The notes below the pieces were generated by a model. The model did no database searches and was not told where the DNA came from. It saw only the letters and a list, made by a program, of their open reading frames with translations. A stretch of DNA of 64,000 nt from Octopus sinensis (Eukaryota): positions 10,354,001 to 10,418,000 of the forward strand of contig NC_043026.1 in the NCBI RefSeq assembly GCF_006345805.1. Reading direction: 5' to 3'. Positions 36,443-38,044 of the stretch are shown piece after piece (within the stretch, counting starts at the first letter, position 1; each line of letters opens with the position of its first letter). Position numbers and translations under genes: made by a program.

Positions 36443-37123
36443 CTACCCTTTTCCTTTCTTCCCTATATGAATATATTTGTGCTTTGATAAATCACATTTT
36501 TGAGAGAATGATTTACCACAAATATCACAGTGATATGCTTTCTCTCCTGTATGAATATCTTTGTGCGAAGCTAAGTTACTGCTGTCAGAGAATGATTTAC
36601 CACAGATATCACAATGATATGGTTTCTCTCCTGTATGAATATGTTTGTGTCTTGTTAAGTTACTGTTTTGAGAGAATGATTTACCACAAATGTCACAGTG
36701 ATAGGGCATCTCTCCTGTATGAATACGATTGTGTGTAGATAAGGTACCACTTTGAGAGAATGATTTACCACAGATATCACACTGATATGGCTTCTCTCCT
36801 GTATGGGTACGTTTGTGTGCAGTAACATGAATACTTCTAGAGAATGATTTACCACAGATATTACAATGATATGGTGTCTCTCCTGTATGACTACGTTTGT
36901 GCACAGTAACGTGACCACTGCTAGAGAATGATTTACCACAGATATCACAAGGATATGGTCTCTCTCCTGTGTGAATATGTTTGTGTCTAGATAAATAACT
37001 ACTGTAAGAGAATGATTTATCACAGATATCACACTGATATGGCTTCTCTCCTGTATGAATACGTTTGTGCATAATTAGGTTATATTCTTTAAAAGATGGA
37101 CTTTGTACAGATATCACAGTCAT
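36443..37123 (-). CDS. ZNF4: C2H2 zinc-finger array, 7 intact fingers
   Basis: 226-aa ORF; start could be 37123 or the internal MHKRIH Met. Confidence 0.8.
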
Positions 37124-38044
37124 ATGATCTCATCTCTTTTACCATGTGTTCAGAGGAAATCAATTATACAATTTTCTCACTCTCTTCCATTATTTTTCTT
37201 CACAAATCCCAGTTTATATATTTTTCTTGCATTTGTTCTTTTACTTAATTTCTTACAAACACTTCTTCTGCTCTATTTCTGTTCAGTGTTACCTTTATTT
37301 AGCAACACTTTCATAAATTTATCCATCTGCAATGAGTACACAGGCTCCTCTTCTTTGACACTCCAGTCAGGGATTTTCACAAATATGGCTAATAATATTA
37401 ATTCAGAGCAAATGTTTCACAGGAATTCTACCAGAGATTTGTAGAAACAATCTGATACATTTGTTTTGTGTAATATTTGCCTTTTGTCTTTAAAACGTGG
37501 TAGATATTGAGGATGCGTCTTCCGTTACATCAATGTCATCTGATGCTCTGAAATTATAAAGAACCAACAGTGTAAGATTTAGAGGCTACTTAAAAAATAC
37601 AAGTTTATTTCTGTAGAAACAAACATTTACCATAACAACTGAGCTGGATTCTGACAAAAGCGGATGAGACATGTGGAAGTGCGACTCCCAGAAAGACATG
37701 GGATGAAATACTGAAGAACATTTCAGGTGAGATAAAAAGGTCCAACATACCTGGTGCCTTGCTGCACTCAAGAAGATCTGCATTCCATAACAGAAGTCTT
37801 AAGACCTGTCGCTCTGGAGAGGAAAAGCACTTGTGGCCATGTAAAAGTTCTGTCACATTAAAGTGTCCATGTGGTGCCACATAAAAGCAGCCTGAATACT
37901 GTCAGGTGGTTAACACTAGGAAGGGCATCCAGTAGAAACCAAGGTAAATCGGACTGGAGTCTGCTGTAGATCTCCAGCTTGCCAGCCCTGCTCAAACCAT
38001 CCAACCATGCCAACATAGACAATGGACATTAAAAGATGATGAAT

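Follow-up and report, generated by a model that had tools for sequence, protein, structure and literature searches.

A Shared TTT-TAA-A Site in Five Tandem Zinc-Finger Copies of Octopus sinensis: Very Probably an Inherited Frameshift Scar

Introduction

The C2H2 zinc-finger genes of cephalopods have been massively and recently expanded (PMC12513265), and lineage-specific cluster expansions of this kind, together with those of the vertebrate KZFP genes, are the described systems closest to the locus considered here. This locus occupies a stretch of 64,000 nucleotides (nt) from Octopus sinensis (assembly GCF_006345805.1, contig NC_043026.1, positions 10,354,001 to 10,418,000 of the forward strand), hereafter termed the window, to whose first letter all window coordinates refer. 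The window is a tandem cluster of C2H2 zinc-finger (ZNF) genes interspersed with transposon remnants and satellite-like repeats, and it harbors seven finger arrays (ZNF1-ZNF7), five of which (ZNF1-ZNF5) carry an identical TTT-TAA-A site in what was their first finger. As in the known cluster expansions, tandem 84-nt finger units are joined by TGEKPY linkers, young paralogs lie among fragments and remnants of transposons, and a lesion that is very probably the founder's has been inherited by all daughters. Nothing essential sets the octopus locus apart from these systems; its particular features are that the lesion falls in finger 1 and that a Met codon before the first His (His1) of this finger offers a ready downstream start.

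The same site had been put forward in a preliminary description, made from the sequence alone, as a candidate +1 recoding signal, with a single ancestral insertion named as the simpler explanation. It does resemble the antizyme- and RF2-type +1 sites (UCC_UGA and CUU_UGA, with UUU in the antizymes of Agaricomycotina), in which a re-pairable P-site codon is followed by a stop. Known stop-adjacent +1 sites keep both open reading frames (ORFs) across deep phylogeny and are assisted by stimulators, namely a 3′ pseudoknot, a 5′ element or the nascent peptide (PMC5009743), whereas among the octopus copies the upstream ORF is broken in three of five, the downstream frame is uncoupled in two of five, no structure accompanies the site and the relatives examined lack it. 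The stop-directed +1/+2 shifting of Euplotes (AAA-UAA) also places a homopolymeric codon before an internal stop. That shifting, however, is a genome-wide property of the Euplotes decoding system (PMC10235951, PMC4759687); nothing suggests such decoding in cephalopods, and the octopus paralogs show decay instead of maintenance. A further likeness is to the remnant upstream ORFs that persist after the loss of an N-terminus, since the ancestral ATG of the octopus copies now opens short ORFs, with a downstream AUG presumably in use. The evidence assembled below leads us to regard the five-copy site as very probably a frameshift scar inherited from the founder of a ZNF subfamily that is young and in part decaying, and not as a recoding signal.

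The Shared Site and the Broken First Finger

The arrays are built from repeated C-x2-C-x12-H-x3-H units with TGEKPY-like linkers and an 84-nt period, and they belong to the tandem C2H2 (Krueppel-type) zinc-finger family. At the 5′ edge of five of them stands the 19-mer TTTTAAAGAATATAACCTA, which was found as exact copies without mismatch at 3510-3528 (+) in ZNF1, 25746-25764 (-) in ZNF2, 31456-31474 (-) in ZNF3, 37076-37094 (-) in ZNF4 and 38495-38513 (-) in ZNF5. Dinucleotide shuffles gave a chance expectation of 0.09 matches in the window even with up to three mismatches permitted, and the earlier observation of five paralogs with an identical site is thereby borne out. Every copy of the 19-mer presents UUU_UAA_A, a re-pairable P-site codon followed by a stop.

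The arrangement is most readily followed in ZNF4, whose array ORF runs open on the minus strand from an ATG at 37072-37070 (36443..37072, MHKRIH..., 209 codons) and contains seven intact C2H2 fingers, with seven Pfam matches each to zf-C2H2 and zf-H2C2_2. Upstream of it, another ORF opens with an ATG at 37143..37145, encodes an 18-residue peptide and ends at the TAA 37091-37089; its letters read ATG GTA AAA ... TAT GAC TGT GAT ATC TGT ACA AAG TCC ATC TTT TAA, and the Cys pair of the dead finger 1 (TGT GAT ATC TGT ACA AAG) is located at 37101..37118 (-). The run of four T and the stop that ends this ancestral Cys frame occupy 37089..37094 (-), which is the place of the extra base discussed below, whether in the T-run or in the adjacent A-run. 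In the adjoining frame the sequence continues as AAA GAA TAT AAC CTA ATT ATG CAC AAA CGT ATT CAT, that is, 12 residues leading into the array. ZNF5 is organized likewise, with an upstream ATG at 38564-38562, an 18-residue peptide and a TAA at 38510-38508 (-).

As had been described, the frame from ATG GTA AAA is open up to the TAA in both copies, and the skipping of one base joins KEYNLIMH(K/E)RIH to the Cys pair with the exact spacing C-x2-C-x12-H-x3-H, open into the finger array. The finger rebuilt in ZNF4 carries Ile in place of the canonical Phe. Alternative ATGs in the frame of the array were likewise confirmed, at 37123 in ZNF4 (37121..37123, a possible start that extends the open frame to 36443-37123) and at 38542 in ZNF5. 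The exact spacing follows from the position of the lesion, because any 1-nt insertion between the second Cys (Cys2) and His1 gives it once a base is skipped. Similarly, a homopolymer insertion creates a re-pairable codon beside a stop by construction, since a T placed before AAA yields TAA.

It is scarcely credible that the site is an error of sequencing or assembly, the true sequence having three T and an intact finger 1. Homopolymer lengths are indeed often misread in some chemistries, but the same T4A3 recurs in five copies that were assembled separately and are told apart by differences close by, a run of four T is short for errors of this type, and the independent lesions in its neighborhood reveal a region that is not under coding constraint.

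Origin of the Extra Base

The relatives used for comparison were reached through searches of a protein collection. The query with the real ZNF4 ORF returned mostly generic ZNFs, among which the proteins P0116 and P0120 pointed to loci of O. sinensis and O. vulgaris, respectively; a query with the conceptual read-through peptide, aimed at a relative with an intact finger or the same frameshift, returned generic short C2H2 matches only. Two loci were accordingly compared, the O. sinensis locus L001 (CM016862.1, via P0116) with four copies of the 5′ module, and the O. vulgaris locus with one copy, while ZNF7 served as an outgroup within the window (57419-58738, - strand, extending to 58766 with its 5′ part; 15 fingers, apparently intact).

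Upstream of the site, ZNF1-4 share more than 400 nt of homology, which can be aligned with the upstream region of the intact ZNF7. This homology includes ATGGAAAAGAGTGAGAAA, encoding MEKSEK, which is present in ZNF1-4 and in ZNF7 and constitutes the protein start of ZNF7, of P0120 (O. vulgaris) and of P0116 (O. sinensis). Read in the MEKSEK frame, ZNF1-5 give 33 residues, after which the frame is lost. In the relatives the leader passes straight into finger 1: the intact gene Os_35558 at L001 does so (MEKSEKIKEFISLEHMIKEMTSYDCDICAKSFSRKCNLILHKRSH) and goes on for about ten fingers, and the transition is equally uninterrupted in P0116 and P0120.

The distance from Cys2 to His1 locates the change. 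It amounts to 36 nt in ZNF7, whose finger 1 is in frame behind the same MEKSEK leader and upstream region, and to 36 nt in three of the four O. sinensis copies and in the O. vulgaris copy; the remaining O. sinensis copy, Os_22815, has 35 nt owing to a 1-nt deletion of its own. ZNF3, ZNF4 and ZNF5 have 37 nt, and ZNF1 and ZNF2 return to 36 nt only through a second deletion of 1 nt, with two in-frame TAA codons left behind. Because the outgroup distance is 36 nt against 37 nt in ZNF3, ZNF4 and ZNF5, the extra base in finger 1 of ZNF1-5 is, as judged from these alignments, a derived one-base insertion. The frame-disrupting change relative to the intact outgroups is common to all of ZNF1-5, as a founder lesion predicts.

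The codon at the site is CGA, CAA and CAA in the outgroups, and TGA in the decayed copy Os_29652. From such a codon the present letters could have been reached by two equally short routes of two changes each, either an extra T combined with a C-to-A substitution, or a change of CAA/CGA to TAA combined with an extra A. In the upstream non-coding and leader/finger-1 partitions, ZNF1-4 are 84-96% identical to one another and 72-85% identical to any O. sinensis copy of L001. Given that ZNF1-4 thus resemble one another more than they do any of those copies, the lesion would have arisen within the lineage of the window. Of the genomic paralogs that the preliminary description had proposed to survey for the site and the Cys pair, five modules of O. 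sinensis and O. vulgaris were covered: neither the 19-mer (with up to three mismatches in the four O. sinensis copies and up to four in the O. vulgaris copy) nor the extra base was found in any of them.

Two side observations concern these reference genes. Directly 5′ of the ZNF7 start codon lies the acceptor-like motif ttttgtgatttcag (58753-58766, -), the CAG of which is replaced by GAG in ZNF1-3 and by GTG in ZNF4 and may represent a further 5′ defect. Besides, P0116, a 'zinc finger protein 239-like' entry of 305 amino acids (aa), appears to rest on a chimeric gene model that spans 69 kb (L001 10001-79113), with its leader taken from the L001:10001 copy, its fingers from the intact gene L001:35558-36454 and a distant 3′ exon thereafter; the L001:10001 copy itself has a frameshift after finger 3.

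Secondary Lesions and the Question of +1 Frameshifting

After the shared insertion, the leader and finger 1 of each copy have been damaged further. ZNF1-3, for which upstream lesions had already been reported, have in common the loss of 2 nt, whereby TGT GAT in the Cys pair becomes TGA. ZNF1 and ZNF2 have both in addition lost 1 nt immediately 3′ of the 19-mer, a change that converts AACCTAATTATG into AACCTATTATG (3523-3536; 25738-25751), puts the KEYNL frame out of register with MHKRIH and leaves the array frame reading F-stop-R-I-stop-P-I-M-H. The 5′ module of ZNF1 (3416..3536, +) thus comprises a leader ATG at 3416, a 2-nt deletion junction at 3482-3493 and the 1-nt deletion within 3523-3536, and that of ZNF2 (25738..25858, -) a leader ATG at 25858-25856, a 2-nt junction at 25781-25792 and the 1-nt deletion within 25738-25751. 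The ZNF3 module (31447..31556, -), with its leader ATG at 31556-31554 and its 2-nt junction at 31491-31502, has lost a further 12 nt (junction 31504-31517), which removes ATG GTA AAA GAG and with it the ATG of the upstream ORF.

ZNF4 and ZNF5 have been affected differently. In ZNF4 the ancestral MEKSEK-type start codon (37188..37190, -), homologous to the starts of ZNF7, Os_35558/P0116 and P0120, is followed by a copy-specific nonsense TAA at leader codon 9 (37164..37166, -), where ZNF1-3 have GAA. In ZNF5 (38045..38567, -) all homology is gone 5′ of 38567, the leader being replaced by unrelated DNA. The five further lesions in total, namely the 2-nt deletion of ZNF1-3, the 1-nt deletion of ZNF1/2, the 12-nt deletion of ZNF3, the TAA of ZNF4 and the truncation of ZNF5, are nested on the tree of the copies. 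The reading as a single ancestral insertion is supported by outgroups that make the extra base derived and by five copies that all bear further independent lesions. The ancestral ATG still stands in a good context (A at -3, G at +4), and it now opens short ORFs, 8-24 codons long, which either stop ahead of the array ORF or run into it.

The 1-nt deletion of ZNF1/2 was also considered as a compensatory repair and rejected: it restores 36 nt and at the same time leaves TAA-AGA-ATA-TAA in frame, and it postdates the 2-nt deletion in the Cys pair.

Programmed +1 frameshifting would require that in ZNF4 and ZNF5 a tRNA-Phe on UUU, with UAA in the A site, slips to the overlapping UUU and continues in the array frame, giving a protein with an extra complete first finger. 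In its favor are the perfect UUU_UAA_A re-pairing beside a stop, which is the geometry of known sites, the C-x2-C-x12-H-x3-H unit of the shift product in these two copies, and the position of the site within a modestly over-conserved run. Geometry and spacing, however, come automatically with a 1-nt homopolymer insertion inside a finger, and hence they are not independent evidence. On account of the secondary lesions in ZNF1-3, ZNF4 and ZNF5 are the sole copies in which a +1 shift could rebuild the finger; three of five copies have a broken zero-frame Cys pair, and in two of five (ZNF1/2) the +1 frame no longer connects with the array. Decay of the upstream CxxC frame across paralogs had been named in advance as one observation that would speak against recoding, and it is what ZNF1-3 display. 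The joint upkeep of both ORFs expected of a +1 site is likewise absent, the upstream ORF and/or the frame continuity being damaged across ZNF1-5.

The two copies capable of the shift fare little better. The upstream peptides of ZNF4 and ZNF5 are separated by four substitutions, every one of them non-synonymous, as are three of the four zero-frame differences between ZNF2 and ZNF4, a tendency that runs counter to purifying selection on this peptide, albeit on counts too low for statistics; the core Phe of the finger is lost in ZNF4, whose ancestral start is cut off by the TAA, and ZNF5 is but a fragment. A 3′ stimulator was not detected: the 120 nt 3′ of the site fold with a minimum free energy of -13.1 kcal/mol, which does not improve on that of shuffled versions (z = +0.72), and an Rfam scan of the whole window matched no family. 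Euplotes-type shifting, for its part, is tied to the altered termination of that lineage, and no relative examined at L001 or in O. vulgaris has the site. The earlier emphasis on a site unchanged in five copies holds for the 19 letters, which are identical, and fails for the recoding geometry, which ZNF1/2 have lost through the deletion directly 3′ of them.

We thus consider the candidate recoding signal, as a property of the ZNF4/ZNF5 pair, to be very improbable, and functional +1 shifting in ZNF4 is equally hard to credit. A low-level slippage on UUU_UAA_A in ZNF4 alone, yielding a minor isoform in which the remnant Cys pair and the array form one extra finger, has an equally slender chance; if true, it would be a homopolymer frameshift scar caught in the course of its co-option as a recoding site in a metazoan transcription-factor gene. 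Two other modes of recoding were discarded. For -1 frameshifting on the overlapping U_UUA_AAG heptamer, the TTA/AAG frame is closed by stops on both sides and lacks a start codon. A-to-I editing of the UAA, dismissed by reasoning, could abolish the stop but would leave the two frames offset as before, and the same frame meets another TAA two codons further on.

The case also carries a caution. Whenever one base is inserted into a homopolymer within a periodic domain, the result will mimic a slippery codon and stop whose bypass restores a perfect domain, and among young tandem duplicates such a scar is bound to look 'conserved'; outgroups and secondary lesions settle such cases quickly.

The Probable Founder Lesion and the Fate of the Arrays

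The founder-scar explanation can be set out as a sequence of events. The founder of ZNF1-5 would have been built like ZNF7 and Os_35558, with a short MEKSEK-type leader passing straight into finger 1. A single extra base would then have arisen at the T/A homopolymer junction between Cys2 and His1 of its first finger, either as TTT-AAA to TTTT-AAA or as CAA to TAA together with AA to AAA, and would have left the Cys pair and the ancestral start codon out of frame with the remainder of the array. Duplication of the mutated copy, or the spread of the lesion by gene conversion, could have produced five identical sites. The scar itself would not be decoded, and the leader with the Cys-pair remnant would drift as untranslated or short upstream-ORF sequence, gathering lesions. 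The arrays of ZNF1, ZNF2 and ZNF4 may be expressed now, or may have been until recently, as N-terminally truncated proteins, which would start at the ATG whose Met formerly stood directly ahead of His1 (...LIM-HKRIH); in ZNF4/5 the same-frame ATG 17 codons upstream could serve instead. That ZNF1, ZNF2 and ZNF4 use such a downstream ATG has a chance little better than even.

The state of the arrays bears on this last step. The MHKRIH ATG (37072 in ZNF4) is common to all frame-broken copies, and from it the arrays of ZNF1, ZNF2 and ZNF4 run uninterrupted for 433, 321 and 209 codons. The ZNF1 ORF (3531-4832, +) comprises 15 finger units, two of them degenerate, and the ZNF2 ORF (24778-25743, -) comprises 11. 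ZNF3 and ZNF5 are dead copies. The ZNF3 array (30237-31452, -) is open for 317 aa and its 3′ part is dead, since two TGE*PY linkers are each interrupted by an in-frame TAA (within 30497-30507 and within 30329-30339) and the reading frame shifts at the end, while the ZNF5 array (38045-38542, -) retains about five fingers, one of them with a His-to-Leu change, before it is cut at 38045 by unrelated DNA.

All five copies may alternatively be plain pseudogenes that are not translated, their open arrays and conserved run being due to youth and gene conversion; this is possible, though we regard it as fairly unlikely. It draws on the clear death of ZNF3 and ZNF5, the two degenerate fingers of ZNF1, the near-unity ratios of non-synonymous to synonymous substitution (dN/dS) in the youngest pairs, the absence of an annotated or assembled protein for the window ORFs from the protein collection, and the loss in ZNF1-3 and ZNF4 of the CAG of ZNF7's acceptor-like motif. 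On the other side, ZNF1, ZNF2 and ZNF4 are all free of stops, for which simulation under neutrality gave P = 0.007-0.0007, at a per-lineage divergence of 0.04-0.06 (the range observed in the non-coding 5′ flank) and with indels uncounted. The disabling events are moreover enriched in the leader of about 140 nt over the arrays of about 900 nt (crude binomial P = 0.008-0.015), and dN/dS of the finger framework is 0.21-0.36 for the older pairs. These results together indicate arrays that stayed open when the leader had gone, for which translation would have to begin 3′ of the lesions.

A further argument against plain pseudogenes comes from independent O. sinensis copies at L001, in which an ORF again opens at the ATG before His1. 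Os_22815 lost its finger 1 to a deletion of 1 nt and Os_29652 to one of 16 nt, neither at the position of the other nor at that of the window lesion. Os_29652 nevertheless has an ORF from the homologous ATG CAC (L001 29738-30535; MHKHNCREEKLY...; 265 aa) with nine intact fingers and the usual C-terminal tail of the family, and Os_22815 has one of 168 aa (L001 22931-23437; MHKHIHTGG...), which is decayed. The codon before His1 is ATG in all copies with a broken finger 1, and TTG (Os_35558), GTG (Os_10001) or AGA (ZNF7) in copies in which this finger is intact. The pattern fits the notion that a Met codon before His1 would let an array survive the loss of its N-terminus, and survivorship bias could also give it. 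By this count, at least three different lesions have cost members of the subfamily their finger 1, and each left an array ORF that starts at the same internal Met. Such recurrent loss hints that the Met makes N-terminal truncation survivable, a small detail in the turnover of cephalopod C2H2 arrays.

Several results weigh against the picture of a founder scar in front of arrays that are still maintained. An exact look-up of nine window ORFs in the protein collection found none of them. Framework dN/dS in the youngest pairs is 0.57-1.0, so that the copies could all be young pseudogenes. The simulation of ORF maintenance takes the lesion to date back to the time when the copies diverged, an assumption that gene conversion would weaken. 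Lastly, the site lies in an invariant run of 20 nt (29 gapless columns), extending over ATTATGCAC up to and across the downstream ATG, for which a local column shuffle gave P = 0.03-0.045, where plain neutral decay predicts no such signal.

The local shuffle is the fairer test of this run, since the site was picked for being conserved; treated as a pre-specified site, zero steps in 20 nt have P = 0.01-0.02 at the local rate of about 0.2 parsimony steps per site. A naive column shuffle (P = 0.014) was superseded by these local tests, having mixed in hypervariable helix codons and all-gap columns. The leaders of ZNF1-3 are at least 93% identical and count as little more than one lineage. Taken as the weak signal that it is, the invariance would be compatible with chance, with gene conversion among tandem copies, or with constraint on the context of the new start codon. 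Recoding offers no explanation for it: ZNF1/2, in which a shift leads nowhere, keep the run just as invariant.

The invariance would also be accounted for if tccttcttttaaAG|AATATAACC were a newly used 3′ splice site, by which an exon of the 5′ untranslated region is joined just before the ATG. A pyrimidine-rich tract followed by AG does stand 14-15 nt 5′ of the conserved ATG, all further lesions would then be intronic and harmless, and the run is modestly over-conserved. The putative acceptor is nonetheless AAG and not the usual YAG, the same letters are simply explained as former finger-1 coding sequence, and the homologous intact genes start at the leader ATG, which together render the splice site improbable.

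Other Features of the Window

The remaining array, ZNF6 (47258-48697, -), looks intact. Two orphan pieces of the family were also recognized, a C-terminal ZNF end with its 3′ flank at about 1560-1716 (+), upstream of ZNF1, and a two-finger fragment at about 24500-24680 (-), directly downstream of the ZNF2 stop.

Remnants of mobile elements are dispersed among the arrays. Broken pol ORFs of a retro-element occupy 9467-11493 (-), one of which matches the integrase zinc-binding domain PF17921 weakly and below threshold (E = 1.2e-4, 22.6 bits against a curated cut-off of 25.5). Two related ORFs at 39387-39905 (-) and 41549-42013 (-), which share ...HLEFASPVWNPYLAQ...RRATKRIPS... and have no Pfam match, resemble fragments from the C-terminal part of a protein of non-LTR retrotransposons. 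A further repeat, about 400 nt long, is interspersed in many copies (44087-44482, 44661-45074, 51884-52296, 59511-59899, 5703-6100, 54946-55196 and others); it is 82-92% identical to a copy beside the O. vulgaris ZNF gene (L002:9556-9963) and is open in one frame (…RQASFSFRLPNPLTRHWSA…), again with no Pfam match. In general, the interspersed repeats of the window match their O. sinensis and O. vulgaris copies at about 90% identity.

Tandem repeats are equally abundant. A 62-nt unit is repeated 23 times with 98% identity at 62016-63463, where several open frames give rise to spurious ORFs of more than 500 aa. The satellite-like arrays at 32636-33858 (103 nt x 12) and 40036-41060 (50 nt x 20.6) have the core AGCTAGAAATAGCAGCCAAAT in common. 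In addition, an AT/AC-rich microsatellite with a period of 20-22 lies at 19833-20565 and a 199-nt x 4 tandem at 28363-29160, and a 169-184-nt tandem is found at 23225-23796, the 45-nt core of which recurs at 22683-24058 and in the 3′ flank of ZNF4.

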